This document shows positions 8,001 to 63,150 of a stretch of DNA of 64,000 bases, piece after piece (position 1 is the first letter of the stretch; every line of letters begins with the position of its first letter). Below the pieces are notes generated by a model that saw nothing but the letters and a program-made list of their open reading frames with translations, made no database searches and was not told the origin of the DNA. Origin of the DNA: Marsupella aquatica (Eukaryota > Plantae > Marchantiophyta); the NCBI GenBank assembly GCA_973895155.1, contig OZ316897.1, forward strand, positions 9,633,832 through 9,697,831, given 5' to 3'. The translations under genes were made by a program, and so were the position numbers.

Positions 8001-8953
8001 GTAGAACGCCACTCCGAGCCACATGTGCAGAAAAGTTTATTGTCATCAACAGGCGTCTTACCAGTCCTGGCAAGAGAAACAGTGGTCCCCCATAATCACC
8101 AGGCCAATGTCCATCGTCCGCCTGAATGGTAGAATAGAATCTGACGGCTCGAGTCAACGTGGTTTCTACCGCTGCATTGGTCAAGTCCTCACAGGCACTT
8201 ACTTCCACTTGAGCAGGTAAAGGTGGCAAAGGATTCTTCTTTGCAAACTGAAACATGAACCAGGTACAAAATCAATATTCAGTCAGGGCCAGAGGATACA
8301 GCTGCAGAACAAAATCTCCCTTGACATGAAAAACTTATTCGTCGATCTTATAGCTCCTTGCATTTCACCATTCAAGACGAATCAGCTCTGAAAGAAGTTA
8401 CGAGCTAAAATACCCCCTGTTCCATCAAGAATAACCGAAGGTCGAAGAGGGCTTGTGCAATAAGCTTACTCCCATTTCATCAAGAAGAATATGTATGGTC
8501 CAGGACGATTTATAAGATAAGAATCCTCCAATGTCATCAAGCAAAACTAGGTCCAGGAGCTAATGAGATAAATCTAATCCTACTTCAGGACAAGCTCTTG
8601 AAGGATTTTATGAGATAGACTTCTCCCATGTGATCGAGAAGAGCGAGCTCCAGGAAGATGCGATGAGGCAATTCTCCACCCCATCACCTCAAAACGAACA
8701 AAGTCCAGAACGATTCATGAAATGATTTGGAATGTGGCATTCGAAGTGTACGCACTTGGAGCCGCATGGGAATGTCGGCACTGTGGCGTTGCTCATGGCA
8801 AGTCTTCGTGAAGAGGGCCCGTGCCTCGTCTAGCGTAGCACTGTCAGCAAGCGTGGCGGCCTCGTCTTCGTACTCCCACACTTGCCGACCCACATGCCCA
8901 TTCGTCGTTTGCAGCCAGTCCCCCCCTCCCTCTCCGATTTTTAACGTCCACAT
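2055..8953 (-). CDS. 2,3-oxidosqualene cyclase (cycloartenol/lanosterol synthase family triterpene cyclase), 18 exons, ~757 aa
   Basis: GT-AG exons traced by hand: 8756-8953, 8062-8247, 7783-7872, 6716-6919, 6504-6588, 6229-6395, 5775-5963, 5455-5568, 5126-5248, 4700-4822, 4500-4598, 4246-4302, 3916-3962, 3519-3662, 2841-3018, 2650-2730, 2378-2461, 2055-2159. Total 2274 nt in one frame with no internal stop seen. Motifs: [85 protein letters not shown]. Confidence 0.96.
3708..3859. repeat. ~67-bp tandem duplication ending in a fold-back palindrome, in an OSC intron
   Basis: catatccaataagaacaactcctactgat...caaatgatttttgca occurs twice; then cactcaaatgatttttgcaaaaatcatttgagtg is self-complementary. 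Confidence 0.85.
7280..7750. repeat. Degenerate local duplications in OSC intron 3
   Basis: gctacgtgcgatg(g/a)aca...aatcagtc...agagt occurs three times; ttgtatgtca(a/g)ga occurs three times. Confidence 0.75.
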
Positions 8954-25769: not shown

Positions 25770-26839
25770 ACAGAAAAATATGCAAATGTTCCCTTCCCCG
25801 TTGACTGTCCACCCGAGACGAAAGCATTTGAAATCCATATTTAATCATGGTCATTGAAGACTATAGACATGTGTGCGGTACCTGAATAATCATGAAATTA
25901 CTTTCGTGTACAGTGGCATGCATGTGTATTACCAACAGAAATCCTCCAGGTCCCCTCTTCATTACAGAGTACGCTTTGGTATCTCCATAGGTATCTTGCT
26001 AGTGTTCCTGCCGTCTGGAAAATTGAGAAGGAAATTAACTCATCGTGCACATGAAGCCTCTCGTCCATGGACATGCTTTTGTTAATTAACTTCAACAATT
26101 CTACTGAGACGTACGGGGCTTATTACGACTATTCCTTTCAATGTTATCAATCGACCACGAATCTTTGACTGGAGGAATTAGTTGACAATGTTTGACTGGA
26201 GGAATTGACAACAATGTTGAGAAGTCAAGAACGAGGAGCTTACAAAGATGTTGTTGTTTTCCGACAGAACTCCTAACCCCGCAGAAGCAAATTTACTTGT
26301 TGCACAAGTACTAAACCGCATGGGAAAGATGGCACCAGCGGAAGTCCCATATAATTTACTGGAAAAACATGTCGTGCATCCAATTTGGTCATTATATTCA
26401 CGTAATCCGATGACAAAGCATAAGACACTTTCGGGTTTTGCCAATTTTTGTGATCCTAATGTTTCCCCATGGACACGTAGGTGCTTACAAGTTGGATTTT
26501 GACTGCTAACTGTGACTTACTGTCCCAGTCAGGGTTCCTAAGATCTATAATGGTCATGCTCCTACATACCATGCACACTTCAACCAGGCAGGCATGCACA
26601 CAAGTTTCACTTCAGGTAGCGCACCATATATTTAGCTGCAAAATAGAGTAATAAAACAACAGAAAAATATGCAAATGTTCCCTTCCCCGTTGACTGTCCA
26701 CCCGAGACGAAAGCATTTGAAATCCATATTTAATCATGGTCATTGAAGACTATAGACATGTGTGCGGTACCTGAATAATCATGAAATTACTTTTGTGTAC
26801 AGTGGCATGCACGTGTATTACCAACAGAAATCCTCCAGG
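25770..26839. repeat. 181-bp near-identical direct repeat (25770-25950 and 26659-26839)
   Basis: acagaaaaatatgcaaatgttcc...cagaaatcctccagg occurs twice with about two mismatches. Confidence 0.92.
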
Positions 26840-30101: not shown

Positions 30102-31946
30102 TCCCTATTACAAAGTCGTTCCACTCAAGCCACCAGGAAGAATTGTTTGCAGTTCAATGTCTTTACAATTTCTGGTTCATAGTAAGTAAATTCCCCACAA
30201 AGGCAAAGAATGGTATGACAAGTGCTGCCCAAGATGACTCTAACTTAATGTCATCAGAAGACGTGACATGAAGGTATGTAAGTATGTTAAGGTGTTCTTT
30301 GAGAATGTACGTATTAAAATTTTATGTCATCTTTCAAAGCCTAAACTTAGCCCATAATGAATGTCCTCTCTCACAACCTAAACTTAGCTTGCAAATGTAG
30401 ATGTGCCTCCTTGCCCATTCCATGCCACTCCCACACCCCCACGACGTCCCTGAGAATTTGTACTTAGGTGAAAAAGCACACCAGTCCCTTGGCCTCGCTT
30501 CCGGCCAAAATGTCCAACTCCCTCACAAAAGATTTTATGGCAAGCAACATTGCCACCATTGATTGACCCCATACGGTTAATTAAAGATTGTTTGAGTATG
30601 GGCATGCACACTCCCCTCATTCCTTCGTTAGCGGGCTCTTCCTTGGTTCTCCATTTGTCAGGTTACCCTTGCCCATTCCTAAAAGAAAATTGTGCCCATT
30701 TTAAAAGACAACAAACTCCTGTAGCTGACTATTTAAACCCTAAACCAAGCAGCCAACCAGGCTGTTCAACACTACTAGTAAATTGATTAGAAGATATCTA
30801 GGATGGGTTCCCTCCTACTTGTTAAGTCTCCATCTTGCCACATGGTGAAATTGCATTAAACACCTTTCAGCCCCCCAACCAGCTTTCATCCCCTCTTAAT
30901 TCCCTATTGGCTACATGCACAATTGTTGGATCCTTTCCCCTCCTTTAATTAGATCACGGATCAAGGTACAGTCGCAACAACGCTGTATTTACGCTAACCA
31001 CTACCTTAAGGCGTCAATGAATGATTGTGGCCAGCTATACATAGGGTAGTCCATAGAAAAAATTGTGTTTTTACCACTTCACACAAGTGGAGTTTTAACA
31101 CGTGACAGACTATTTTGCAGTAAGGACATTGAGCTGGTAGGATAAGGACACCTTCCAGTTCACATAAACCCAATCATATCAAACCACATTCAATTGATAA
31201 GTCTTTCCTAAAGGTACTACAGCGTTGGAAGGACCAGTGTAGTCTTTCACTCATATTGTTATTTGGTTTGACTGAATCCATAACAGCGGAGCAGAGAGCA
31301 GAGCAGCCCACCTTGACAAAAGGTTTGTCCTTGGAGTTTTTATGTTTGCTCTTAGGTAGTCTATAGCTTTGAGTAGAACCTCTACGTACTTGTGCATAGC
31401 TTGGAATACAATGGAAATTAATTGCAAAAGTAAATTGCTAGCTTGGCTAAAGAGAATAACTTGGCTCCCAAATTGTCACCTAGACTACTCGTGAGGAAAG
31501 TCTACTGTCGCCTCAACATCGATAATATGAGGAAGGATTGTTTACCCTTGTCGGAAAACAAGGGTGAATTTTTTATGTGCAATGGAAGAAGATGGAACCA
31601 GGGTCGTGGCCTTGGTCATGGCTTGTAGTGAGCACAGAAAAAAAGACTGGCGTTATTGGACAATTCCTTTTATGAAGCCTTTCAAACAATTGATGATTGT
31701 TGGCAACAAGCATAAGAGTTCTCATGTTTGGAGGTAATTTTTGGGACTCTACACTTTGGTTTCATCATTGCAGTGCATCAGCCATGACTAACATTTTATT
31801 TTCTTATGCAGTCCCAACAGCATTGTTGGCAGGCAAAGGACCGCATTCAGTTCTTTTTTACATTCCAGCATGGATAATCTCAGGTTCATTTCATCTTTGC
31901 TTCATCAAGTTTTGTTGAATGTACTTAGCTTTTGATTAATGTTTTA

Positions 31947-32286
31947 TGTCACACCATTCTGAGTAGTGTAGTAGTATATCGTGCTATTAGAGTATGTACG
32001 TTTGGTATGAGTGCTATTGGAGCCGATAAGGTTCTGTCAGGTTTGTGTGAGAGGGTACTTCTCACTTGTGAGGCATTGAAAGGTCATCTTTCAATGTTGA
32101 GCCTTGGAGAGAGAGGAGCTTGAGGAGCTTGAGTGTGGCTGTGGTGACTGTGAGCTCCGCTTGTGTAACGTGGATTCCTTGAGTAGTGCAAGGTGCGTTG
32201 GCTTGACATACGTGTGTGATCGGATCAGTGCGGGATCGATGGGGTATTGTTGACCGGGATCGTTGCACCGATTGTATGGGAGATTA
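31947..32286 (+). repeat. Terminal repeat A1 (340 bp); second copy A2 at 41016-41355
   Basis: tgtcacaccattctgag...gtatgggagatta; four substitutions counted between A1 and A2. Confidence 0.95.
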
Positions 32287-32297
32287 CATTGAAAGAT
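32286..32297 (+). promoter_or_regulatory. Putative self-priming primer-binding site (Tf1/sushi type)
   Basis: ACATTGAAAGAT is the exact reverse complement of ATCTTTCAATGT at 32086-32097 inside A1. No TGG-type tRNA PBS follows the repeat. Confidence 0.65.
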
Positions 32298-32555
32298 CAC
32301 ATTCGAAATCTGTTGTACGGACTGTGCGGATAGAAGTTCGATTGATTGAGTTGTCGACGGTTCGTGGTAGCTCGGATCGTGTGTTGTTATCGAACAGATT
32401 GTTGGTATCTTGACCTGTATCGTTGTTGTTCGATCGGCCTGTTTCCTGATCGATGTACAGATCTGTGATTGGTGACAGGTTTTGAGTTGGAGGTCGATTG
32501 ATGATTCATGGAGGAAAGCGAATGTTGAGTAGATGTTGGACAGTGGAAGTCGATC

Positions 32556-32646
32556 CGTGAGGCTTCAGATCCGATTGCCGGCTACTGTGAGGCTTCAGAT
32601 CTGATTGTCGGCTACTGTGGGGCTTCAGATCTGATTGCCGGCTATT
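32556..32646 (+). repeat. 30-bp tandem repeat, 3 copies, in the retroelement leader
   Basis: gtg(a/g)ggcttcagatc(c/t)gattg(c/t)cggcta occurs three times. Confidence 0.9.
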
Positions 32647-32873
32647 GTTGGACGATGTTGGCAAGGCGCAGGTGAAGCGACGGCTCTTTTCCTGAAGGAA
32701 CGGAGCTGCCAATGCCCCGTGCGACGGTATCATCGTTTCAGTGAAAGAAACGAGGGTCAAAGGTGTTGAATCAAGCTGCTGCCAATTCTGCGTTTTTCAT
32801 GAAAGAAATCGACAGTTTTCGGGAGCTTTTCGTGAAGGAAGTAGTCGTTTTTGGGGTCAGGTGTGAGGCGCAT

Positions 32874-33070
32874 GAGGCCACCCATCCCGAAAGTGCTCCC
32901 AACCGCGAGCGCGAAGTCACCCATTGCGAGCGCAGGCAGGCGCGAGGTCGAGGTCACCCATCCCGGGGCTATTCCGGGCCGTGAGCGCGAGGGGAGGCAC
33001 AAGGTCGAGCGCGAGGAGGTCACCCATCCCAGGGCTATTCCTGGCCGCGAGCGCTTAACTGGCAAGTTCT
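32874..33070 (-). promoter_or_regulatory. 5S rRNA-derived Pol III internal control region: one full A-IE-C copy plus three partial copies
   Basis: Reverse complement of 33014-33070 is AGAACTTGCCAGTTAAGCGCTCGCGGCCAGGAATAGCCCTGGGATGGGTGACCTCCT. It aligns ungapped to plant 5S as recalled from memory (AGAACTCCGCAGTTAAGCGTGCTTGGGCGAGAGTAGTACTAGGATGGGTGACCTCCT), 43/57 identical. Confidence 0.85.
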
Positions 33071-33792
33071 CATCCCACCTTGTGTACACACAAGCTTTGA
33101 CAACTTGTTGTTTAGATTCAAGCGCCAGGGGGCTTTATACACTTCCCGGTTTGTTTAGAGGCCTATTTTAGGCCAAATCAGAGGCTGTTTTAGGGTTTTT
33201 GATACTTCTGAGTCCATCTAGACTCACAGATTGAACCAATTTTGCCTTGGTTCTCATCTACAACATTGGAGTGCCATTGTGAAGCCTATTATGAAGGCTC
33301 TTCCTTGAACCTTATGCACATTGTCATATTGATTTGCATTTGCTTTTGTGTGGAGAGTTGAATGGTATCCATTCTTGTTTCTGGATCCTCTTCACACATG
33401 TTTCCTGTTTATGCGCCATGTTAGTTTCGTGTGGGCGCTTGATTCCATAGGAGTGATCCGGGTTTGCAACTGGACATTCTAGTGTGCTGTGTATTTCTCT
33501 CTTGGTGATGTTGGAGTGATGCCCAACACACCATGGTGAGTGCTTGTGGTGCTGACAGGGATAGATTGCCCTTAGGGTTAGCACATAGATTAGGTTAGGG
33601 TTGGTCACCACGGATTCTTCTGGTGCTGCTGGATTACCCGATGAACGACGGACCGGTTTCACTCGGAGTGGGGCACAGTTTTGGCCAACGGCATTGGTAG
33701 CAGTCAGCAGTGCAGCTTCAGACAGTGATTTTGATGAGGACTCAGTGACCAGTTCTCCTCATCATCAGGTGGTTGCACCTTTGTTGTGGGAT

Positions 33793-36700
33793 ATGGACGA
33801 GATGTACGGGGCTACAAAGGGCCCATGACGATACTCTGGTGCAGTTGGCACAATTGATCTGGATGACTTCATCCAGGAGTTTGATACGTGGTGCGATATG
33901 CAGACATTGCGTAATGTCACGTTGTTTACCCCTTTCATGGCATGGAAGGGATTATTCCAGCATTTGGAGGGGTCACCCATGGATGACTACCATGAGTTTC
34001 GGAAGGCTCATTTGGTTGAGATTGAGGCATGGAGGCAGCATTGGTTGCCTAATTACGTGTCCATCACCTATGGCACTAGTGCGGCTGCCCAACCAATTAC
34101 CACAGCTGCTGCTTCTTCTAGTAGCACTAGCCAGAGTGGCACACCATCCACCAGCAGCACTCCAGCAGCATCCACCACTACTCCTGCCGGTGTGATTGTG
34201 ACAGGAACTGGAGTTGCGCCAGCATTTAATCCTGTGGTGGAATTCTTTGAGGTACTGAAGTAGAACTATCAGGGTGTGAGAACTGATAAGTTGAAGGGTC
34301 TTCAAGAGTTCCAACGCAAGACTGGAGAGAGCCTACGTGAGGCATACACACGTATGCGCAGATTGATCACTGTCACCAAGGGAGTGACAGAGGCTCAGGC
34401 AGTCCAGTTTTGGTATGCAATTCTGGACAGAGAATTGCGACGCAGAGTGAGAGATGTCACTCTACTTAGGGATGCAGATCCCACATTAGTAGTTGTTTTC
34501 ATCCTTTCTGAGCGCATTGAGCTCAATATGGTGAATGAGAAGGTGGTGACTTTCGGATTTGCCAAGGAAGCACCAAAGGCTGCATCTACATCCACACCAC
34601 AGCCTACTGCACGGAAGAGCCAGAGGGAGAAGCCTACTGCACGAGAGTCTACTAGCCAGAGACCTGTGCCCTCTTATGCTGGACAACAGTCAGGATGTTG
34701 GACCTGTGGTGGGGATCATGCACAGAGATATTGTCCAGATCATAGAGGATCAGGGGGAGCATCAGCGCCTGATCAGCGACAGTGTGATCACTGTGGAGCT
34801 CCTGGACACACCAAGGATAGGTGTTTCTCACTCCACCCTGAGTTACGGAGAGGAGGATCCCGTACACATGATCAGGGAAGAGGAGGAGGAGGTAGAGGTG
34901 GTGGACATGGTCGTGGCATGCCACATGCAGAGAGACAGGGAGGTGACGCTGCCCCTCCTATAACCATAGATCCAAAGGATGCTAAGATTGCTCAATTGGA
35001 GCAACAACTAGCTGCCATGGCTAGTTCCCAGGTGAGACCTAATTCTGGTGATGGGGCATCTACATCCTATGGACCTTCCACATCCCATGGTCCTTCCACA
35101 TCTTATGGAGCTGATGGAGACCTTGCCACCATGGGATTCATGTGTGGCACTGCACATATTGATGCATCAGCAGCTTTGACACGTGGGGCAGCCAAAGCTC
35201 TTGAGCCCCGAGGAGCAGTAATGGAGTTAGATCCACAAAGGGGGGATGCACGTCGGCAGACAAAGCTTCCTCAGTCTTTTACATTATCAGAGACAGTTCA
35301 GACTGCCTCTATGAACCCGGTTCGGACAAACCCTGATGTGGGTAAGTTGGCAGAATCAGGTAGTGATGCAGTAGGGATGACAGGTACCTTGCTGGGGGCG
35401 GCTACTGCCATAGTACGCACCCCATTATTTTCAGTGACAGACATGCTAAACTTGGGAGTTGGTCCTGCAGAAGTGTTCAGATTGGCAGCTACACTCTGTG
35501 AGGACACTCCAGTGGTTGCTTCCCATGCAGAAGCAACTTGCAGTGTTGATGCAGTGAAGACCATGCCACCTACTGCTACTAGTGAGACATGGCATGCAGC
35601 AGCAACGAGGTTGGTGGATTTACCAGCACACCCTGCATTTGAGAGGACTAGGTTTAAACCTAGTGTTGTGTCATTGGATAATCGGAGGGGTATCTTCCGA
35701 TTAGTTGGGCCTTGTGGAGCAGTATACCAGCCAGAGAGAGTGTTACTGGATACTGGTGCTCAGCCCTTGATGTTGGGGAAGTCTGCCATACGTGGATTGG
35801 GATTGCGTCCAGAGGATTTGGAGGATTGTCCCTTTCCCATTCAGACTTCATTGGGGGGACCTACACCTACACAGCATATCATCAGGAGACCACTTGATTT
35901 GAGGATTCAGGAAGGTCATACCACAGATAGCTCCCAGATACAGGCGCGAGCTATTCTGACTAAGGCAGAGTCATATGATGTGTTGGTGGGATGTACAGTG
36001 CTCTACCCCATGGGATTTATTCTTGATTTTTGGGAGGAATCAGTGTCATATAGACCTGATTGGCAGTCAGGAGATGCTCAATTGAGCAAATTGCCAGTGA
36101 GATTTAGTGGACCTGTGGGAGGCTCTAAATCCACACCATTGTCTTTGGCAGCATTCAGTGGTGTAATTGCTGGACCTGATGATTTGATTGAGGGTAATGC
36201 GCATGCAGCCGATGTTTCACCATTGGAGGAGTCTCATGAGGAGCACATCATGCGAGGGTTACCTATTGGCAGTGTTGTGCCACCAGTGTGGGGCACTACA
36301 CAAGCCTTGCCACAGGCAACAGCACGATTGGTACATGATGCATGGCGTCATGCTTTTACACCACAGTCAGGAGTAGAGCAGTCTCTTGCAGATGGACCAT
36401 TGGATACCACTCCTATTGCTTGGCAATATCCACCGGAGGGTATTTGTTTGTTGGATCTTTTTGGTGGGATTAGCACTGGATTGGCTGCTGTTCTTCAGGC
36501 AGGAATTCCTGTGCGTCGTTATTTGTATGTGGAGACAGATGAGACAGCACGGAGGGTCTCATTGCGACATGTGGCTATGTTGGTGGATAGATATCCATAG
36601 TTGCTACCAGTGGATGTTGTTCGTGGTTATCAGCATGCACTACCTGCTGATATTTCATTGCTGGGGGCGGATCATCTGTATCGTGTTGGCCCCATTGATT

Positions 36701-37548
36701 TGGTGATTGCTGGTTGGCCATGTCAGGGCCAATCTAGAGCTGGCGTTGGGCATGGACTTCATGATCCACGCTCTGCATTGTTTTGGGAGATGTTACGGGT
36801 GCTACGTCATCTCTAGCTACATCAGACACAGTCTCCAGCATACATTTTGGAGAATATGCCATTGTTAGGTGATGATCGTAGTCGGATTGTTGCTAGTGTT
36901 CACCAGGTGAGGTCATGGATTGCACCTGCTATGTTATTGGATGCTGCACGTGTGGGTTCTCGTGCACATCGTCCACGCTTGTGGTGGACTAATTTGATCC
37001 CATGTGAGGTGCTGAAGCGTGCATTTGACAGCATTCCACGCTCACCAGCCTTAGTGGTGGATAATATTTTGGATCCAGGGCGTCGTGCACAGGGTGTGAC
37101 CCAACCTGATAGACCTCCATTGGCAATGGTCAATTCAGTTGGGTGCCCACGTTGTGCATTACCCACTCTTGTCAGCCACTCTACTTCATATGCATTCAGA
37201 GCAGGTGGCCCTGGACTTGTATGGGACACAGCTCTCCAGCAGTTAGTGGAGCCTACAGCTGATGAGAGAGAGCAAGCTATGAGATTTTTGACTGGCACCA
37301 CTGCAGTTGCCTCTGTGTCAGAGGGTTTGCGGCGCCAGGTTCTTGGTCAAGCAATGGATTTGAATTGTTTGACTTGGATTATTAGCTTAGGAGTAGCTGA
37401 ACAGTTGTGGATGCGCTTTGCTGGAATTACTGATTGTCCCTTGGTGAGCTTGCGGTCCACTGAGACAGTATTGACCACAGCTGGGGGCGAGCAGACAGTC
37501 CATGGACCTATGGCAGGATTGGCCAAGGCTGGACAAATTGTTGAGTAG
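33793..37548 (+). pseudogene. Retroelement ORF1: Gag (two Zn knuckles) - aspartic protease - C5 cytosine methyltransferase, with four in-frame stops
   Basis: ORFs 33601, 33898, 34276, 36601 and 36847 share one frame. Motifs: QEFQRKTGESLREAYTRM, CWTCGGDHAQRYC, CDHCGAPGHTKDRC, VLLDTGA. Stops at 33826, 34261, 36598, 36814. Confidence 0.9.
36439..37380 (+). pseudogene. DNMT3-like DNA (cytosine-5)-methyltransferase domain inside the polyprotein
   Basis: Motifs in canonical order: I LLDLFGGISTG, II YLYVETD, IV DLVIAGWPCQG (catalytic PC at 36718-36723), VI YILENM, VIII RAHRPRLWWTN, IX EPTADEREQAM, X RRQVLGQAMD. Confidence 0.9.
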
Positions 37549-40500
37549 GAAGGGACTGCTCAATCTACTGCTAAATAGCAATCATCGGCTATCTCTTCTA
37601 CCCTACAAAGAGATTAGGGATTTGGTGGAGAGTTGGGAACCACAGCTTGGCCCTAAGTTAACAGGGGAGGAGAGACGTCGCATGCATCGATTCCTGAAGA
37701 GTTATTGGAATTGTTTTGCATTCAGCATGAAGGATTTGGGGACATTGAAGGGCCCTGGTATTCAGATTGAATTGGCTAGTGATGCGCCAATCTTTCGTAG
37801 ACCATACCGTTATAGTGACATGGAGAGAGCTCTGATTCAAAGCAGAACTCAAGATTTGTTGGAGGCTGGATTGGTGGAGATTTCATATGGGGAGTATGCA
37901 TCTGCCACAGTGATGCCAGCCAAGAAGGATGTGCATGGCAATTACACAGATAGGCGCATGTGTGGTGATTACAGACCTATTAATCGCCAGACAAAATCTG
38001 ATCGATATGCCATGCCCACACCTGAGGAGATCTTTGATGCTGTGGGGCATGCAAAGGTTTTCAGTTCATTGGATCTGAGGGCAGGATACCATTAGCTTCC
38101 AATTAGGCATGCTGACAGGTCCAAGACAACATTCTGGGGGATTGATTCTTATGGCAAAGATCGTTTATATCAATGGTTATTCTTACCATTTGGGTTGAAG
38201 AATGCACCAGCTGAGTTCCAGAGAGTCATGGATCGAATCCTTGCAGGTTTGGATTTTGTCAGATGTTATATTGATGATATTTTGGTCTATTCTTCTACTG
38301 TGGAAGAACATCAGCAGCACTTGCAGATTGTGTTGGAGAGATTGAGAGCACATGGGTTGAAGCTCCATCCTGGCAAGTGTAAGTTCTTCCAAGACCAGAT
38401 TGAGTATTTGGGCCACACTATATACCCAGGGGGATTGGGTGTACAGCAGACTAAAGTGGAGGCCATTACACAGATTCCTCATCCTACTGATGTGAGCAGA
38501 GTTCGTGCATTCTTGGGATTGGCGAGCTACTATAGGAGGTATGTTAAAGGATTTAGCCAGCTTGCTAAACCTTTAACCATACTCACTAAGTTGGATCAGG
38601 AATGGACTTGGGGTGATGACCAAGAGCATGCCTTTCAGGAGTTGAAGCAAAGGTTGGCATCATCCCCTATTTTGAGAAGATCCATTTCAGGCAGACCATT
38701 TCAGCTACACACTGATTGGAGTGGAGTAGGACTTGGAGCAGTGCTGACTCAAAAGGATGATGAGGGGAATGAGTTTGTTGTGGCTTATGCCAATAGATCA
38801 AACAATTCAGCAGAGGCTAAGTATAGCTCTTATGAGGGAGAGTGTTTGGCAGCAGTGTGGGCTGTTGCACACTTTCGTTGCTACTTGTTTGGTAACCCCT
38901 TCACCTTGATCACTGATCATCAGCCTCTTAAGTGGTTAATGGAGTCTGACAAGCTTACAGGGAAGCTTGCACGATGGGCATTGTTGTTACAGGAGTATGA
39001 TTTCCAGGTGGTGCATAGGCCTGGAAAAGTGAACTTGGATGCAGATGGATTAAGCCGCAATCCATATACCAGTCAGCAAGATGAGACTGGAGCTAGATGG
39101 CATGATGAGTCAGATAAGGAGATGGTGCCAGGATGGCATGCATCTGCCTTTCTTTGTTGGGTGCCAGCATACAGTGGATCTATGGACTCTACCTCATTGG
39201 ATGGAGTGGATGATGAGTCTTCAGATGTGGATGTTGGTGAGGTAACTTCTGGACAACAAGATATTCACAATGATGTGAGAGTGTTGGAATATCTGCGCAG
39301 TGGTTCTATTGTTGGCAGTGTTGATGCCAAGGAACGTGACAGGGTTCTACAGAGAGCCAAGAGATTTCGATGGGAGGGAAACCATCTTTTGAGAGTACTG
39401 CATGATGGTAGGATGTTGGTGGTACCAAAACCATCACAATGAGTACATTTGGTGCGACATGCGCACGAGGAGTTGGGTCACTTTGGTGTGAAGCGCACTT
39501 ACAGCTTGCTGCAGACACAGTATTGGTGGCGTGGTATGCACACTCATGTCCAACAGTTGATAGCTAAGTGTGTGGTATGTGATAGAGTGAGAGCATCATT
39601 TAATGCTCCCACTCCCCAGTTGCACCCATTGCCGATCATGGGTTTGGGATATCGTTGGAGTTTGGATTTTGCTGGTCCATTACCTCTTACCCAACGTCAT
39701 AATCGGTATGTTTTGGTCATGGTGGAGCACTTCTCCAAGTGGATTGAGCTAGTGGCGTTGCCAGATAAAGCCAGTGGAGGAGTTGCTGCTACATTTTTGG
39801 ATCGTGTACTCAGTCATTTTGGAGCACCAGCTGAGGTGTTGACTGATCAAGGAAGTGAGTTCCATGGAGAGTTTGAGAGTTTGTGTGAACAAGCTCTGAT
39901 TGATCATCGTACTACCTCTCGTGATCATCCTGAGGCAGATGGATTAGCTGAGAGAGTTGTGCAAACTGTGAAGAGAGGATTGCGTAAGTATGGCTTGCAG
40001 GTTGGTCATCTGGGAGATTGGGATCTCCAGCTACCTTGGTTAGCTATGGGCTACCGTTTCAGTCGGCAAGCATCACTTGCATCCTTCTCACCTTACTTTT
40101 TGCTCTATGGTAGAGAGCCAGATTTGCCAGCAGCTATTCGTTGTGATGCTGCATCAGTTGTGAACTTGGATGATCCTGATGTTTGGGTCAAGGTGTGTTC
40201 AGAGAGAGCATGGGTATTCCAGCGAGTGATGCCCATGGCTTTTGACAACCTTGCTATTGCCCAACATCGTGATACTTTGAGGTATGTCACTATTCGTGGA
40301 GGAGGTTACCGTGCAAGCATTCGACGATTTCATCCTGGTGATTATGTTTATTTGCAGCAGATAGCACCCACCACACTTGATGTGACCGCAGGCTGGCCAA
40401 TCTTACGTGTGCGTGAAGTATTGCCTTCTGGTGTCCTGATGTTGGAGGGACGCGATGGTATGGTTTGGAAGGATCATGTGCGCAACTGTGCACCATGCCA

Positions 40501-40702
40501 CCTTCCCAACATTGATGGTACAGTAGATCCAAGCTTGGCACATGTTCGTGCTGGCTTGAAATGTATGTTGTGTGGATCTGCTCAGGGAGCAGCTACTATA
40601 TTGATTTGTGATCAGTGTTCTAGAGGATGGCACATGTCATGTTTGACACCACCATTGCAGGTGATTCCTAGTGGATCATGGTTGTGTCCTCAGTGTCGGT
40701 GA
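37502..40702 (+). pseudogene. Retroelement pol: reverse transcriptase - RNase H - DDE integrase - PHD finger, with two in-frame stops
   Basis: RT: RMCGDYRPIN, LDLRAGYH*L, LPFGLKNAP, YIDD. RNase H: LHTDWS, TDH, DADGLSR. Integrase: HAHEELGH..CVVC, SLDFAG, LTDQG, GLAER. PHD: CMLC..LICDQCSRGWHMSC..GSWLCPQC. Stops at 38093 and 39440. Confidence 0.95.
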
Positions 40703-40866
40703 AGCCGACTAGTTATCATTTGTGTTCTCTTGGCAGATATGGATTGCAGGTAGGTGATCGATGGGGCTCACTTGCACCCGGCCTCCTGATCTTCACACCT
40801 AAAAAGGTGTATATCAACCTTGTAGAACTCATGGCTAGCTAGAGTTAGGGGACCTTACTCCCAGCT

Positions 40867-40877
40867 AGGGGGGCGAT
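40867..40877 (+). promoter_or_regulatory. Polypurine tract
   Basis: AGGGGGGCGAT lies directly before TGTGGG, the start of repeat B1. Confidence 0.7.
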
Positions 40878-41492
40878 TGTGGGTTTTGGACATGTGTGGA
40901 CATGAGTTCCACTTGTATTCCATTCTCTTGTATTTATGATGTGGCAGTGTGACTATGTCTGGATGTATGTGACAAGCGATGTATGTTGTGTAGCGATATG
41001 TATGCGCACGACAGCTGTCACACCATTCTGAGTAGTGTATTAGTATATCGTGCTATTAGAGTATGTACGTTTGGTATGAGTGCTATTGGAGCCGATAAGG
41101 TTCTGTCAGGTTTGTGTGAGAGGGTACTTCTCACTTGTGAGGCATTGAAAGGTCATCTTTCAATGTTGAGCCTTGGAGAGAGAGGAGCTTGAGGAGCTTG
41201 AGTGTGGCTATGGTGACTGTGAGCTCCGCTTGTGTAACGTGGATTCCTTGAGTAGTGCAAGGTGCGTTGGCTTGACATACGTGTGTAATCAGATCAGTGC
41301 GGGATCGATGGGGTATTGTTGACCGGGATCGTTGCACCGATTGTATGGGAGATTATTGTGGGTTTTGGACATGTGTGGACATGAGTTCCACTTGTATTCC
41401 ATTCTCTTGTATTTGTGATGTGGCAGTGTGACTATGTCTGGATGTATGTGACAAGCGATGTATGTTGTGTAGCGATATGTATGCGCACGACA
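40878..41492 (+). repeat. 3' terminal block B1(40878-41013)-GC-A2(41016-41355)-T-B2(41357-41492)
   Basis: B copies are 136 bp and differ at one position. B1/A2 junction is the palindrome GACAGCTGTC. Confidence 0.95.
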
Positions 41493-43399
41493 TTTATCCA
41501 TTCATGTGATCATTCTGTAGTTGCTTGCACATAATGTTTTTGTCATATATGCCATGTAGGGAGGATCCAAATAGACCTGCAGAAATGATATCCTATGGTG
41601 GGGGATTGTACCATTTATCATGGCCAGTTGCTTCATCAAACAAAAGGAGAGCTCGTCTTTTGAGGCATGGTGATATTGTTACAAAGTTCTCAACATTTTG
41701 TCAGGCCATTGACGAGAGCCTTGTTGAGCTAAATGCTCCCCTTGAGTCTTCATTGGATGCCGAAGACTGCATGGTCTTACGTTGAGACCATTCCTAGTCA
41801 TCAGTGTGATATTGTTTTCCACAAGTTGGCATCATTAGTTGGCAACTTCTTTGACAGGACAACCTTTCCTGGGAAACTTACATCAGCCATACATGCCACT
41901 TGGGAGACATTTGGCAATTAGTTTGTTCTTCATATTTTGGACTTAGTTTGTAATTGTCAAGACCTTGTATGGGTGTTTGTTCAATTGTTTGCTTCTGTGA
42001 TATTTACTTCTAAATCATCTCTTTCCTCAACATTTCAATTTTTCGGGGAATAGAGTGTTGACATGGGTTCTTTGTTATAGTATTTTGGTATATTTTGGCC
42101 TGTGCCCCTGGCTGGCCTTTGTCATATGTAGGGATGGAAGTCTTGTTGGATGGCCACAAAATGGGTTCAAACCCACTTGGGAGTAGTTGTTTTCTCAATT
42201 ATAGAAAGACATAATAAGGAAAGTGGGCATTTTCCCTCTCTTTGCTAGACTCTCCATATAGCAGTCTCAAAACAATTGTCCCTTTCATATGTCCACCATT
42301 GAAAATATTTTTAAGCATATTCAAATTTTGGGTTTATCTTCTATATATATTACAGATTCTTATGGTAAACTGAAGTAGGAAGGACCACATTTTGGTGGTC
42401 CATGGGAGTTTGGGGCCCATGACTTGATGATTATGAGTCCTATAATAGTCTTTAGTTTTTCACTTGCAATATAACTAGAGAGGAGGAAGTCAAAGTGAGG
42501 CAAGTCCAAATATTTCATTTTAACACACTGCAAATTAATCTAATGGAATAACTCTTATTTCTTTGATGAGATACTCAACCAAAATTCCAAAAGTACACTC
42601 AGTTTGATGGAAGAGTAGCTTACGCACTTCTCTAGCATATACTCAAAACTACAAAATATTTGAATTTATAAACATTGACTTTTTTCAATTAAAATAAAAT
42701 TGGACCAACTTTATTGTCCACGGGCTTTTGAGTTCCCCTAACACATTTTTCTAATGTTTGAGAAGATAATTATGATGGAAGTTTGTGCTCTCAAAATAAA
42801 GTGTTCTAACTTAGTATGTTTTCTACATACTATCCAATCTGGATTACCCTATGTATTTTTTTAGTCTGGATTACAATAAGCATTTTTTAACTCCAGGAAA
42901 TAATGTAAATGGCCAGTGTTGTGTTTACTTGTTGTTAGTTTTCTACTTTGAAACTTATGCATACCCTATGTAGTACATGGTCAAATGCACAGTCAGTTGA
43001 CAATTTTATATCTATAAACACTGTCTTTCATGCAGCAATTCCAATCTCATGCATCACCATCAAGAACTTAAATAGTGTAACACATTGCATTCTGGAATCT
43101 ATTATTACACCTTTCAATATTCAACATCCCAAAGCTTTACTTCTTTATATTCTTGCCAGGGTGCAATGGTACAAAGATAAACCCTTCAAACTAAAGCAGG
43201 CCTGAGTCTAAACAACTAAAGGTCTTCCTAAAGTATAATTAGAGTTTAGGAAGATGTGGGTGAAGAGACATACCTCTTCACCGAAAATATCCTAAAGTAG
43301 ATGTGAAAGAACTAGCTACAAACTAATAAATGCTGAATGGTGGTGCCCTGAAGAAAATAAGTGGTGCCATGAGTAAAAATTAATAACCTAAACATGAAC

Positions 43400-49379: not shown

Positions 49380-50220
49380 TGATGGAAATCTTGATAGAGA
49401 AATTCTGGAGCTATGGACAAATGATTATCATAACCATCATGTTTTTGGAGAACAACAAAAATTGAATGGCCATCATAGCAATGGACATCATAGCAAGCGT
49501 CACACAATCCACCCCCAAAAATATTGATGGACAATCTTGATAGGGAAATTTCAAAGCCATGGTCAAATTGTTGCTGACCACAAGGATCCGCAGACATCTA
49601 AGCCATGGTCAACAAATCCCTTACCATAACCATCATGCTTATGAAGGACAATGGACAAATTGAATAACATCACAATGAGGGTAACACTATCCATCCCCAA
49701 AAAATTGATGGACAATCTTGATAGGGAAATTTCGAAGCCATGGTCAAATTGTTGCTAACCACAAGGATCTGCAAACATCTAAGCCATGATCAACAAATGC
49801 CTTACCATAACCATCATACTTTTGCAAGACAATGGTGACAAATTGAATGAACATAAGGGCAAGGGTCACACTAACCACCCCCACAAAATTGATGGATAAT
49901 CTTGATAGGAAAATTACGAAGCCATGGTCAAATTGTTGCTAACCACAAGGATCCGCAAACATCTAAACCATGGTCAACAAATGCCTTACCATAACCATCA
50001 TACTTTTGCAAGACAATGGTGACAAATTGAATGAACATCAGGGCAAGGGTCACACTAACCACCCCCACAAAATTGATGGATAATCTTGATAGGAAAATTA
50101 CGAAGCCATGGTCAAATTGTTGCTAACCACAAGGATTCACAGACATCTAAGCCATGGTCAACCAATTCCTTACCATATTAACCGTCATGCTATTATAGGA
50201 CAATGGACAAATTGAATGAA
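49380..50220. repeat. ~182-bp tandem repeat, ~4.5 copies, upstream of the TET-like ORF
   Basis: gatgga(c/t)aatcttgatagg..aagccatggtcaaattgttgct.accacaaggat at ~49526, 49707, 49891, 50075. Confidence 0.92.
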
Positions 50221-53200
50221 TATACCATAAGCATCATTCACTAATGCCACATAACCTTTTGAATATCAAAGTCTAGACTTCAAGGCTGAAAATCATTTCA
50301 TTATACCATTGGTTTTATGGCAAACAATCTTGAATACCTTATGCAATACATTCCCAACATAACTCTACTACATTATTTGCAAACAATGTGAAAGACTACC
50401 TTTGCACTAGAAGCCAAAATCAAAATTCTATAAGAAAATAGTTTGTATTGAGTTACCTACCTGGTTTGTAAATTGATTAGCCATGAAAAAATGTGGTAAC
50501 ACAACCTACATCAACATTTCAAAATGGTCAGCAAAAGTACATTAGATCAGACTAAGAGCTTCAATAAATGTCATGACAACATTGGAGGGTTGTAAAAAAT
50601 TCAGGTTTCTTTGATATCTAGTATACAATGCGAGCTTTGTCTATATTGTGTCTAAGCTTTAATGGGATATTGATCATATGAATGGTGGACAGATCTTACT
50701 TGGCTTGTATAAAGTACATAGTATTATGATTGTGGAGAAGTGCACTCATTAAGAATACTTAGATAACTTTACCAAATGAATATAAAATGTTAACTGGACA
50801 TATAATAGCTAGTTTTGCATTGCTAAAGAGCGTTCCAATATTGCAACATATTTGGATATCCAAGTAATCAAAATATTTTTCATATCCAACATCAAGAATA
50901 ACATCACACAAAATCAAGGACATGTAATATCAAGAATACTGAACATCAAGAATAAGAAACATCAAGGATAAGAAATATCAAGAATCCATAACATGAAGAA
51001 TATGGCATATGAAGAATAAAACATTACACCAAGAACGAGGGATTTGCTTGATCAAACCCCAAAATGAAATTGACATGCTATTTGGTCAGACCCCTGAGTG
51101 ATGCAGACCATTGATTGACCTTGAATCAATGTACACAAAACTTCAGCGGTCCTATCAAGTACGGAAATTCAATGTGGGATATGATCATGCAAATCCCTCC
51201 ACCAGGAATACATAATTGGACAGCCAGGTTGCAGGCAAGGCTTTTCTAGTCCAATCCTTCCATAAGTTGTATTAATCTTCTTCTTGTCTAGTTTGTGAAT
51301 CAAAAGGACCCAGCCCTTTTAAAGAGTGACTCTCTACTGATTTAAATGAATTTTTATTATCAAGTGGTTCAACCCTAAACAATTTATGGTCCTAAGTTGC
51401 CTAAGGCAGAGGAATAATCAAATCCCGTGAAACAGGTTGATAAGGAGAAAGATAGACCAAAGCAGGACACTGACCAGACTAGCTTATGGAGAAATGCCTC
51501 CAGGTATCTAAACATAAATTTCTAAATCTTTGGTTGTTTTTTGGAACTGAAATCTCACAGAAAAGGAGACTAAAATAGGCCAGTACAATATCAGGGGGGC
51601 TCAAGTCCACAACAAACCCTGACAACCAGACACATTTATGAGCCATCCCAATCAAGGGACAAAAGGCCCAGAATCCAAAAGAATCCCCCCTGCCCCCCCC
51701 CAACTTCTCTACCGCAACAGAAATCTAAAACACCAAAGAATACAACCTACAAGCTCAAATCCCACCCACCCCTAAAAAAACCTAGGAGCCATCCCACATG
51801 TAAGAGGATGCAGTAAATCAAGCCCAACCTAATCAAACCAAATAAGAGGAGAACAAGCTGACATGGATGTATTTCCTAAAGGACAGTTTAACTGTTTTCA
51901 CCAATGGATAGCCGCACTAGGGCGGATCAAAATGCCTACACAACATACAACCCCCACAGACCTCAAAAATATTAGGTCCGAGGGAAAGAAGCAACCCAAC
52001 ATGCCCCAAAGCACCAAGGGAAGGGAGAACTAATCCAACTCTTACCATAACCCTGATCAACCACTCCCTTTTAAGTCAAGATGCCTCCAGACTAGGGCTA
52101 CAGAACAACACAACAACCCCAAAGGGAATCCGAGGCTTCCCAAGCATAGCAGCAGAAGGCTGAGGGAACTGGCAGACATTGGGCCAGTGTGGGTATGAAG
52201 ATAGCAATGCGTGCTCCATCCATGAGACCCCGATCCCCAGCCTCAATGAATTCTAGTTCAACCGAGCTCCAATGACACAATTGTGCAAATTAAGCCTCAA
52301 TTTTCATGACGTACTATCCGCAGTTGGCTCCACACGAAACCAAGATCAAAGTAGGATTCAAACTCGGCTGGATTCAGGTGGTTCGGTGATAGGAGAAAAG
52401 GGTGGGCACCCAAGTTTTTCAGAGGGCAATGTGCAGAAGGGGAGACTTCACTATAATTTGCAAGTTATTTGTACATACAACAGATCACTGCAAAGCAGGA
52501 GACTAGCAAAAACAACGTAACCTTTTCACTTTCTTGCTATTGAGAATACATTATCGCTGGACATATTCGTGATGAATATGATAAGAACTGTCAGCATGAA
52601 ACTAACGATAACAACTACTGGCTCTAAACAAATCTACAAACATTTGATCAATCATTGGAACACCTTCAACAATAATTGACAGACAGCGTCTCATGTACAA
52701 GAGCAAGTGGGAGGCAGTGCATGTGCCAAAGGATGCAGCGATTTTGACTGCATTAGGTTTCCAGTTTAGAGATCACAGCAACGGTAGCAGGTTTTGGAGC
52801 CTAGCACACGCACAGAGGCCCATGTCCATGGCAACAGCTTTGGAGCCCAGCGGACTGATGAATCTCCATGGCTATGGCAGCTCGTGAGTGTGGTCCTGTA
52901 CACTCACAAGCCCCTCGACGAGACCCCGCATAGCTAAGGGGCATTCCGCTAACATTCCCACTGAGTCAGAAAAGTAACTCTGGCACTTTTTGGCAGACAC
53001 TCAACGGAGCCTGGTTGGGGCTACGGGCTCTGGCTGGGACTCAGGATCCGAGCCTTTGCTGGGCACCTCTAGACAGAATGACTGACCAATACTTGGCTTT
53101 AGTGGTATTTATATGGACAGTGGCGATTTAAAGAAATCAATGGTGCCCAATGTAAAACTAAATCTGGAAATAAATTTCAAATTTTATTTTTTTTAACTTT

Positions 53201-61029: not shown

Positions 61030-63150
61030 GGAAAGAGTTAGTGTACCGAGTTAACAAAATACTTTATGCAACACACTATTGTTGAGCTAATCATCATTCT
61101 ATATGTAAATGTGAAACTCTCATCTTTAAATGTGAAACTTCAAGACTCCCTATTGGGTCATTTGACTATAACTCTAGTGTAATTAATTATCTGTTGGCAC
61201 TAGTAAAGCGTTTTGGACAATAAACTCATGTGCATTCAAGCAAAAAGTTAGTGCAGCGAGTTCATTGAGGAATAACTTGCTGACCATTTGTTTTATGGCC
61301 AGAAACCATCATCTCTAACTATAAAGCTTTGACACCCCTATTATAGTGATAAGATTAGGTAGATAGATTCGATCATTTACTGATAACTATAGTGTAATTA
61401 TCTTTTGGCACTTGTAAAGCGTTTTGGACAAGAGACCGGTCTGTGCTTGAGGAAAGAGTTAGTATACTGAGTTAGTCAAGAAACAACCTCGGGAACAACC
61501 AACCATTTCATTATGGCCAAAAACCATTCTTATTGGGGATAATCATTATTCTGAAACACCATGCACATGTAAACACCATACAAAGTAGTCGACATAGCGA
61601 GTACGTGGTTCACCTCACAACTGAGGCTACGTCCACGGGAAAGCAAGAGACCTTTACTTCTCTCTTGCTCCACTCCAACAATGAACAGAAGATCCACCAG
61701 GGGCTGGCATCAGCCCTGGTTATATACAACATGCATCACTACTAACCTAAGCTAAGTCCTAACCTGAGTTAATTAGCCTAACTGCAGTCAGCCCTAGAGT
61801 CACAAGACTAAGAGCAATACTCAACAACTCTCTCTAACTCTTTGAGACCCCATATTATAGTGATTTAGAACATGATAAAACCATGGTCTAGCTCTAAGTA
61901 TAAAGCATTGAGATGCCCTATTAGAGTAGATAGTGAAGTGATAGATAGATTGGGTCATTTACCAATAACTGTAGTGTAATCATCTGCTGGCCCTTGTAAA
62001 GCGTTTTGGACAAGAGCCTTGTGTCTGCTCGAGCAAAGAGTTAGTGTACCGAGTTTGTTGGGAACAACCAACCATTTCGTTATGGCCAAAAACCAGTATC
62101 TCTAACTCTTTGAGACCCCCTATTATAGTGATTAGAAGACTAGATAAACCATTTCTCTAACTATAAAGCTTTGAGATGGCCTAGTATAGTAGATAGTGAA
62201 GTGATTAGATTAGATAGATAGATTGGGTCATTTACCAATAACTCTGGTGCAATCATCTGCTGTAAAGCATTTTGGACAAGAGCCTCGTGTGCACTCTCGA
62301 GCAAAGAGTTAGTGTACCGAGTTTGTTGAGGAACAACCAACCCCATTTCATTATGGCCAAAAATCAGTATCTCTAAGTCTTTGAGACCCCCTCTTATAGT
62401 GATTAGAAATTAGATAAACCATCGTCTCTAACTATAAAGTTTTGAGATGCCCTAGTATAGTAGATAGTGAAGTGATTAGATTAGATAGATAGATTGGGTC
62501 ACTACTCATAACTCTGGTGTAATTAAATAATGGCCCTTGTAAAGCATTTTGGACAAGAGCCTTGTCTGTGCTCGAACAAAGAGTTTAAGTGTACCGAGTT
62601 CGTCGAGGAACAACCAGCCATTTCATTATGGCCAAAATCCAGTATCTCTAACTCTTTGAGACCCCCTATTATAGTGATTAGAAGATTGGATAAACTTTGA
62701 GATGCCCTAGCATAGTAGATAGTGAAGTGATTAGATTAGATAATGTACTGTAGATAGATTGGGTCATTTCCCGATAACTCTGGTGTAATCATCTGCTGGC
62801 CATTGTCAAGCGTTTTGGACAAGAGCCTTGTGTGCACTCGAGCAAAAAGTTAGTGTACCGAGTTCATCGAGGAACAACCAACCATTTCATTATGGCCAAA
62901 AACCAGTATCTCTAACTCTTTGAGACCCCCTATTATAGTGATTAGAAGATTAGATAAACTTGAAGATGCCCTAGTATAGTAGATAGTGAAGTAATTAGAT
63001 TACATAATGTACTATAGATAAATTGGGTCATTTACCGATAAACTCTGGTGTCATCATCTGCTGGCCATTGTCAAGCGTTTTGGACAAGAGCCTCGTGTGC
63101 GCTCGAGTAAAGAGTTTTACTGTACCGAGTTCGTCGAGGAACAACCAACC
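61030..63150. repeat. ~265-273-bp tandem array (5 well-conserved copies plus degenerate copies to the left)
   Basis: ttgggtca..aactctggtg..ttttggacaagagcc..gtgtaccgagtt..gaacaacca..tatggccaaaa starts at ~61950, 62223, 62494, 62759, 63023; older copies at ~61153 and ~61370. Confidence 0.92.

Follow-up and report, generated by a model that had tools for sequence, protein, structure and literature searches.

Architecture of the Marsupella aquatica element

The 64,000-nucleotide stretch of DNA from the liverwort Marsupella aquatica analysed here (contig OZ316897.1 of assembly GCA_973895155.1, forward strand, positions 9,633,832 to 9,697,831; the whole of it is referred to as the window) contains an integrase-encoding Ty3/gypsy retrotransposon at positions 31,947–41,492 that has split direct repeats in place of two long terminal repeats (LTRs). 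Sequence reading and a repeat finder give the plus-strand order TTTA-A1-internal region-polypurine tract (PPT)-B1-GC-A2-B2-TTTA (Table 1). The locus is an ordinary dead member of its family, and the integration geometry of that family is a new variant among LTR retrotransposons, documented previously only by a figure legend. The family is an old streptophyte Ty3/gypsy lineage with a DNA methyltransferase (DNMT) and an integrase that carries a PHD finger.

The Pol order protease-reverse transcriptase (RT)-RNase H-integrase, together with a Gag containing CCHC knuckles, is that of Ty3/gypsy elements, as judged from translation and Pfam. The integrase core has D-D-35-E spacing, and the residues H6, H11, C41, C44, D73, D133 and E168, which are conserved in an alignment of 15 sequences, are all present in this copy. 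A tyrosine recombinase was not found, with no Pfam match to Phage_integrase in the 14 open reading frames (ORFs) of at least 100 amino acids on both strands. The gag-protease-methyltransferase ORF is interrupted by premature stops at 33826, 34261, 36598 and 36814, the frame changes from gag to RT near 37472–37546, a further premature stop lies in RT at 38093, and a stop at 39440 divides RNase H from the integrase. With six premature stops and a frame change, this copy is dead. The cytosine methyltransferase, of DNMT3 type, is placed between protease and RT (36400–37400), and the PHD finger ends the integrase (40560–40700). Pfam gave no match on the methyltransferase ORF of this stop-ridden copy; the closest homologues of that ORF carry PF00145, and a relative on an ENA contig (L017) contains Asp_protease_2, DNA_methylase, RVT_1, RNase H and rve domains. 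The annotation of Marchantia polymorpha includes 14 or more gag-protease-DNMT proteins that belong to this lineage, for example Mp_4g09160 and Mp_8g17980.

The two copies of A differ at 4 of 339 positions and the two copies of B at 1 of 138. The outer ends of the integrated unit are TGTC...GACA, and the flanking target-site duplication is 4 bp rather than 5 bp in length. The same end sequences stand back to back at the B1/A2 boundary as the palindrome GACA-GC-TGTC, which is the sole site of its kind in the window; no further GACA-NN-TGTC sites and no second copy or fragment of the element were found in it. A search of the window for an empty site, using the joined flanks with a single TTTA and allowing up to three mismatches, gave no paralogue. 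A preliminary description of the locus, made from the sequence alone, had already recognized the A1-only 5′ end, the B1-A2-B2 3′ end, the TGTC...GACA termini and the flanking TTTA, all of which are confirmed, with the correction that A is 339 bp and not 340 bp long. Its reading of the B1/A2 boundary as a palindrome whose central two nucleotides are absent at the insertion is also borne out.

Table 1. Features of the Marsupella aquatica element, with positions counted from the first nucleotide of the window.
Feature	Positions	Strand	Remarks
Left target-site duplication TTTA	31943–31946	+	Identical to 41493–41496
A1	31947–32285	+	LTR portion downstream of the palindrome (rest of U3, R, U5); starts TGTCAC, the left integrated end
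ATCTTTCAATGT within A1	32086–32097	+	Complements the primer site; putative 5′ end of genomic RNA acting as self-primer, Tf1-like
Primer-binding site ACATTGAAAGAT	32286–32297	+	Adjoins A1; sets the U5 end
Gag (two CCHC knuckles), protease (LLDTGA) and cytosine-5 DNA methyltransferase (DLFGG, PCQ, ENMP)	33766–37548	+	Single frame; from translation
RT and RNase H	37502–39442	+	Pfam RVT_1, RT_RNaseH, RT_RNaseH_2; frame differs from gag
Integrase: HHCC zinc domain, DDE core (D73, D133, E168), C-terminal PHD finger	39449–40702	+	Pfam Integrase_H2C2, rve, PHD
PPT AGCTAGGGGGGCG	40863–40875	+	Adjoins B1; sets the U3 start
B1	40876–41013	+	First 138 bp of the reverse-transcript LTR (U3 start); ends ...GCACGACA
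Palindrome GACA-GC-TGTC	41010–41019		Back-to-back integrase end sites with 2-bp spacer; uncut, inherited copy
A2	41016–41354	+	Second A; B1 + GC + A2 = one complete reverse-transcript LTR
B2	41355–41492	+	Second B, directly on the U5 end of A2 (GAGATT/ATTGTGGG); ends GACA, the right integrated end
Right target-site duplication TTTA	41493–41496	+	Read in the sequence

Reverse-transcription signals are out of register with the integrated ends

ATCTTTCAATGT, which occupies positions 140–151 of A, has an exact reverse complement in the 12 nucleotides that follow A1, ACATTGAAAGAT. In an unrelated-looking moss-like family of metagenome contigs (L044, L061) the 12 nucleotides after A are instead TCTAGAAAAACT, and their complement is again found in the middle of A. 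Thus, the sequence of the primer site differs between two lineages, each of which has a matching complement within A, and the pairing covaries. The PPT motif of the Marsupella copy, AGCTAGGGGGGCG, likewise adjoins B1 in Riccia, Marchantia, Calypogeia and the loci L017 and L027. With a primer site after A and a PPT before B, the final base of A is also that of U5 (...GAGATT), and the beginning of U3 coincides with that of B (ATTGTGGG). It follows that the LTR in terms of reverse transcription is B-GC-A and that the expected complementary DNA (cDNA) is BA-internal-BA, as the preliminary description had deduced from the same signals, the positions of which are confirmed. The primer site and the PPT bound B...A and not the integrated ends.

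Three other parses of the repeats were rejected. An LTR consisting of A alone would have no PPT before A2, and A2 lacks CA. An LTR of the form A-B is at odds, in reverse-transcription terms, with a primer site that adjoins the end of A instead of B. Unusual priming that would make A-genes-B-A-B directly was discarded because no primer-like sites lie where they would be required.

Relative to the BA-internal-BA reverse transcript that is expected, the integrated unit is circularly permuted: it is opened at GACA-GC-TGTC, lacks the 2-nucleotide spacer there and is flanked by a 4-bp target duplication. In this core point the preliminary description is upheld.

The self-primer sequence in A, ATCTTTCAATG, is preceded by its own complement, CATTGAAAG, such that a hairpin can be drawn at window positions 32074–32098, and the Klebsormidium copy has a comparable hairpin in A (L003:1814–1848). 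These hairpins may compete with, or regulate, priming.

The split layout is shared by the family

Related loci were retrieved by identity or homology of the integrase only, and their choice was therefore blind to the layout of the ends. Integrase homologues were found in Calypogeia fissa, Marchantia polymorpha, Riccia sorocarpa, Sphagnum and Klebsormidium nitens and among many metagenome proteins. The locus set comprised 80 metagenome loci together with loci from Klebsormidium, Riccia, Marchantia, Calypogeia and the ENA contig, from which duplicates of the same insertion were removed by comparison of the 3′ flanks. Loci too decayed for their repeats to be read were left out of the counts (L001 from Calypogeia, L002 from Marchantia, which is Mp_7g09570, and L004–L013, which represent the same locus in ten metagenome samples).

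The 3′ end PPT/B...CGACA-GC-TGTCA...A/B...CGACA/flank, where slashes mark boundaries, is present in Klebsormidium (L003), Riccia (L014), Marchantia (L015), Calypogeia (L016) and the ENA contig (L017). After deduplication, 28 independent loci from at least five taxa have a 3′ end of the B-xx-A-B type. A further class of 17 independent loci has B only, halting exactly at ...CGACA (L048, L050, L053, L054, L055, L063, L066, L075, L078, L081, L093, L047, L020, L023, L031, L073 and L039). Both ends were available on one sequence for eight copies, and in seven of these a perfect 4-bp duplication surrounds TGTC...GACA. The seven duplications are all distinct (TTTA, GGTC, ATGT, ACCT, ATAA, GTGT and CATA), each having a chance probability of 1/256. 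These seven complete copies have the TG...CA ends and the short target-site duplication of Ty3/gypsy elements. Two whole terminal LTRs, also usual in such elements, are lacking in the Marsupella copy and likewise in the 28 independent loci.

At the 5′ side, B was upstream of A in none of about ten ends that could be seen, and neither canonical BA...BA copies nor copies of the form A-B-A-internal-B were found among the loci examined. In two of the B-only loci, L055 and L093, the 5′ end consists of A and nothing more, which makes them A-genes-B copies without any terminal repeat. B-only and B-A-B copies are interleaved on the integrase tree, and the median lengths of their end branches are 0.054 and 0.051, respectively (P = 0.93). 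Since the end branches of B-only copies are as short as those of B-A-B copies, the B-only class does not resemble a product of slow decay after insertion.

Of the two readings offered in the preliminary description, a family-wide mechanism and one aberrant event, the first is upheld by the 28 ends and the seven of eight complete copies, and the second is refuted by the comparative loci; the ordinary BA...BA copies that would have spoken for it were not encountered among the loci fetched by integrase homology. The layout is confirmed as family-wide, and is neither a one-off event nor an assembly error. The lineage spans a charophyte alga, liverworts and moss-like (Sphagnum-type) metagenome contigs.

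The palindrome is the conserved part of the repeats

A and B diverge freely across lineages, with (C)ACGACA-GC-TGTCA(Y)G as the sole conserved block within the repeats. Conservation does not extend to the reverse-transcript tips, which are without TG or CA: U3 starts with ATTGT, ATAGT, AGTTG, GTTTG or ATACA, and U5 ends in GATT, TCAC, TTTC, TTGT, TTTT or CAAT. The integrated ends form a short imperfect inverted repeat, TGTCRYG...CRYGACA, similar to that at the ends of ordinary LTRs. The copies with the least decay have a GC spacer, and its place is taken by GT, AC or AT in older copies (L044, L052, L056, L057, L062, L076, L090, L004 and L026). These variants are consistent with deamination of methylated cytosines at the two CHG sites of CAGCTG. 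The 2-bp spacer is absent from every insertion boundary.

During normal 3′-processing, an integrase leaves recessed CA-OH ends with 2-nucleotide 5′ overhangs. By analogy, nicks placed 3′ of both CA dinucleotides of the palindrome would give recessed CA-OH ends with 2-nucleotide 5′ overhangs.

The A2/B2 joint varies independently of the family tree

At the Marsupella locus the joint GAGATT/ATTGTGGG consists of a complete U5 end on a complete U3 start, with nothing missing. The CA that the preliminary description had reported as lost from this joint reflects a mis-parse: the CA following A1 is the start of the primer site and does not belong to the repeat. In the moss-like family the end of A1 beside the primer site is constant (...CAAT/TCTAG), and four kinds of A2/B2 joint are seen. 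The full joint CAAT/ATACATG occurs in five copies, six copies have CA-AT-ACATG, which is two nucleotides shorter and shows AT microhomology, one copy has CAA/ (one nucleotide lost), and one has CAAT+TC+ATACATG, in which TC corresponds to the two bases that open the primer site. L074 and L086 have a short A2 joint in spite of a full A1 end. The type of joint is scattered on a tree built from B1 and A2, requiring nine changes compared with 8.6 in shuffles. Since the variation is independent of the family tree, the joint is made anew at each insertion, in keeping with non-templated joining of the cDNA tips. The earlier proposal that A2/B2 looks like the end-joined junction of a 2-LTR circle is sustained in so far as a complete U5 end meets a complete U3 start at variable joints; that the circle is covalently closed is a further supposition.

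A model for integration

We consider it likely that the integrase acts on back-to-back end sites located inside the LTR while the cDNA tips are joined by end-joining, such that the ends used by the integrase are out of register with the repeat that reverse transcription delimits. According to this model, reverse transcription would be of the ordinary LTR type, self-primed at the 12-nucleotide site after A and with plus-strand synthesis from the PPT before B, and would yield linear B-GC-A...B-GC-A. The DDE integrase would ignore the cDNA tips and recognize the abutted end sites in the LTR, ...CACGACA/GC/TGTCAYG.... A nick 3′ of each CA would generate two recessed CA-OH ends with 2-nucleotide 5′ overhangs, as in a 3′-processed retroviral end, and these ends would be inserted with a 4-bp stagger and loss of the GC spacer. 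The U5 end and the U3 start would be joined by non-templated host end-joining, either before insertion, as a 2-LTR circle, or after it; sequence data of the present kind would look the same whether joining precedes or follows strand transfer. The product would be A-genes-B-GC-A/B, the cut always falling in the LTR unit proximal to the primer site.

A symmetric 2-LTR circle has two identical palindromes and so predicts copies of the form A-B-A-genes-B as well. None were found and an added asymmetry is required. During retroviral DNA synthesis the first LTR to become double-stranded is that of the plus-strand strong-stop duplex, and it takes up its position next to the primer site well before completion of the other LTR. 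We propose that here, too, the primer-site-proximal LTR would be double-stranded first after plus-strand transfer, and that the integrase would assemble there. The preliminary description had suggested a circular intermediate integrated through an att site within the LTR; the permuted unit opened at the palindrome agrees with this, whereas a covalently closed circle would be an additional assumption that needs the asymmetry just described. B-only copies could arise at insertion by annealing between B repeats, by cleavage before plus-strand transfer, or by integration of a 1-LTR circle.

It is also possible, and we put this forward only tentatively, that an obligate ‘inside-out’ pathway operates across this entire ancient streptophyte branch. 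The integrase would never act on cDNA tips and would assemble on the palindrome of the first double-stranded LTR, that is, on the plus-strand strong-stop duplex, while host double-strand-break repair would close the tips, with end-joining giving A-genes-B-A-B and single-strand annealing between B repeats giving A-genes-B. Such a pathway, if true, would give the DIRS/PAT layout a counterpart based on a DDE integrase and would show an integrase working on abutted ends in nature.

Several observations weigh against the model. No extrachromosomal intermediate has been seen, and we infer a circle or post-insertion joining from topology alone. The A-B-A-genes-B copies predicted by a symmetric circle are missing, and the kinetic explanation for this is our own proposal only. 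Point mutations acquired subsequently by old copies could account for some of the joint variants. Only two or three B-only loci have 5′ sequence, and one of them, L055, lacks a matching 4-bp duplication (TAGC versus ACTC). The complete copy L061 also lacks one (CTCT versus AAAA; L061:140–180 and 8700–8740), and the end of its B2 is mutated (GTCATTACA); it may be an old copy or a recombinant of two copies. At one locus seen in two metagenome samples (L085, identical to L087), B-A is followed by unrelated DNA exactly after the U5 end: the order is PPT-B-AC-A and then ...GCAATTCAAT/AGTGAAAC... (L085:1809–2400, L087:3510–4100), with no B2 within 2.5 kb and the 5′ end off the contig. The arrangement may represent a canonical 3′ LTR or a cDNA tip that was mis-joined, or it may stem from a later insertion. 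Finally, many of the loci are short-read metagenome contigs.

Alternative explanations

The alternative that best survives is an obligatory closed 2-LTR circle in which either palindrome is opened at random, the resulting A-B-A-genes-B copies having been missed or having collapsed to A-genes-B by recombination between the A repeats. Its topology fits, the A2/B2 joint resembles that of a 2-LTR circle, with a heterogeneity that includes primer-site nucleotides, and cleavage of circle junctions by integrase is documented (PMC1180852, PMC4372172). The 17 B-only 3′ ends, whose 5′ ends are mostly unseen, leave room for such copies. However, A-B-A occurs at none of the approximately ten visible 5′ ends, and both B-only loci with 5′ sequence have A alone. 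Even if every untested B-only locus is counted as A-B-A, the result is 15 against 28, which departs from equal use of the two palindromes (P = 0.03), and the B-only copies are no older than the B-A-B copies by the end-branch comparison given above. We therefore regard random opening as unlikely.

Replication of the DIRS/PAT kind appears more improbable still. In this scheme a transcript would run from A1 to B2, its ends would be closed on the internal B1-GC-A2 as template to give a circle, an integrase would have replaced the tyrosine recombinase, and the A2/B2 joint would be inherited through RNA. The repeat layout is indeed identical to that of Ngaro, PAT and DIRS types, as was noted by de Mendoza et al. 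(2018). Against this, the conserved PPT at the start of B and the covarying self-primer site at the end of A are strong-stop signals of the LTR type, and no tyrosine recombinase was found in ORFs of at least 100 amino acids. Furthermore, the A2/B2 joint varies independently of phylogeny, differs from the A1 end of the same copy and in one case includes two primer-site nucleotides, none of which would be expected of a templated joint.

Although one locus alone could not have told the possibilities apart, a single aberrant event in an ordinary BA...BA family, whether integration of one circle or rearrangement of one copy after insertion, is highly improbable given the same layout at 28 independent loci in at least five taxa, seven independent 4-bp duplications and the failure to find canonical copies.

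Tandem mis-joining of LTR reads during assembly is no more credible. The four public runs that hold the stretch are available as short Logan contigs only, none of which spans the 3′ end; the best reach 29 nucleotides into B2, below the 31-nucleotide threshold for bridging. In the runs of the source organism the word depth over the element is 100–1000 times that of the unique right flank, a figure that is not a copy number. Run contigs leave the B ends (41013/41014 and 41492/41493) into diverse sequence, and those that enter B2 from the left carry variant A ends and not diverse flanks. Contigs match without a difference into the right flank over 41464–41800 (runs X19 and X21) and 41464–41567 (X20), such that the right flank and the end of B2 agree in three runs labelled as two organisms. 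The public-run contigs thus support the locus, and the whole structure only in part. The layout recurs, however, in independent chromosome-scale assemblies of Marchantia, Riccia and Calypogeia, in Klebsormidium and in many metagenome contigs, and an exact 4-bp duplication together with an exact U5/U3 joint is not expected from a mis-join.

Other repeats in the window

A four-unit tandem array lies downstream of the element at 49497–50229, with units of approximately 184 bp that are 73–94% identical to the reference unit. Two pairs of direct repeats, at 25770–25950 and 26659–26839 (181 bp, 99% identity, 889 bp apart) and at 62588–62777 and 62852–63041 (190 bp, 94% identity, 264 bp apart), are unrelated to the element and contain no GACA-NN-TGTC.

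Relation to known systems

The defining features of LTR retrotransposons and retroviruses are processing of the cDNA tips by an integrase and, in the integrated copy, two whole LTRs. The present lineage breaks this rule and yet keeps an ordinary DDE integrase. Split direct repeats are consequently not diagnostic of tyrosine-recombinase elements, and standard LTR finders will miss or mis-annotate this lineage. The lineage also offers a natural system for the long-debated question of whether end-joined cDNA, with junctions of the 2-LTR type, can feed integration, and for the assembly of intasomes on abutted ends. Marchantia polymorpha is genetically tractable and contains many gag-protease-DNMT genes of the lineage, and would permit tests of the pathway, given an active copy.

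The preliminary description gave split direct repeats as typical of tyrosine-recombinase elements and not of DDE-integrase elements. The layout had, for a Gypsy element, already been recorded by de Mendoza et al. (2018, Nat Commun 9:1341, PMC5890265), where the legend to Fig. 4c describes the repeats of the Klebsormidium Gypsy-Dnmt3 element as DIRS-structured and its domains as Gypsy. That article reports neither ends nor target duplications, describes no palindrome or mechanism, and regards the element as an algal acquisition. A literature search for an explanation of the layout found nothing beyond this legend. KnitGypsy-Dnmt3 belongs to the same lineage as the Marsupella element, both having a DNMT in the polyprotein, a PHD finger in the integrase and A-coding-B-A-B repeats. 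The integrase is 53–55% identical to K. nitens KFL_015960010 and KFL_005000010 (E < 1e-138), and the Klebsormidium copy L003 has the identical ending PPT/B...GACA-GC-TGTCA...A/B...GACA. The difference lies in what is described, which is here extended to liverworts and moss-like contigs, with the integrase sites mapped and the behaviour of the joint documented.

The Ngaro, PAT and TOC1-like relatives of DIRS share the A1-internal-B1-A2-B2 layout, and in both groups the layout implies that the two cDNA ends meet before or during insertion. Those elements use a tyrosine recombinase, have no DDE integrase and produce no target-site duplication, whereas the present family has an intact-type DDE integrase, TG...CA ends, 4-bp duplications and an LTR-style PPT and primer site. 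Tf1/sushi-type Ty3/gypsy elements also have a primer site after U5 that complements a stretch inside the repeat and not the end of a tRNA; Tf1, unlike the present family, uses the tips of its cDNA for integration and possesses two LTRs of the ordinary kind. Bacterial insertion sequences of the IS3/IS30/IS911 type provide a parallel in which a DDE enzyme acts on back-to-back ends and a 2–3 bp spacer is lost at insertion, as here. They differ in being DNA transposons without reverse transcription, in which the transposase itself makes the junction.

Cleavage of circle junctions by retroviral integrases is the nearest biochemical precedent. The integrases of prototype foamy virus (PFV; PMC1180852) and HIV-1 (PMC1905944, PMC4372172) cut the palindromic LTR-LTR junction of 2-LTR circles, that is, a DDE integrase cuts abutted end sites within a palindrome and generates integration-competent ends. 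In PFV and HIV-1, however, the palindrome is the joint of the cDNA tips, its cutting restores the normal linear order, and the reaction is a side pathway. In the family described here the LTR itself contains the palindrome and passes it on, the joint of the tips escapes cutting, and permuted products are the norm.

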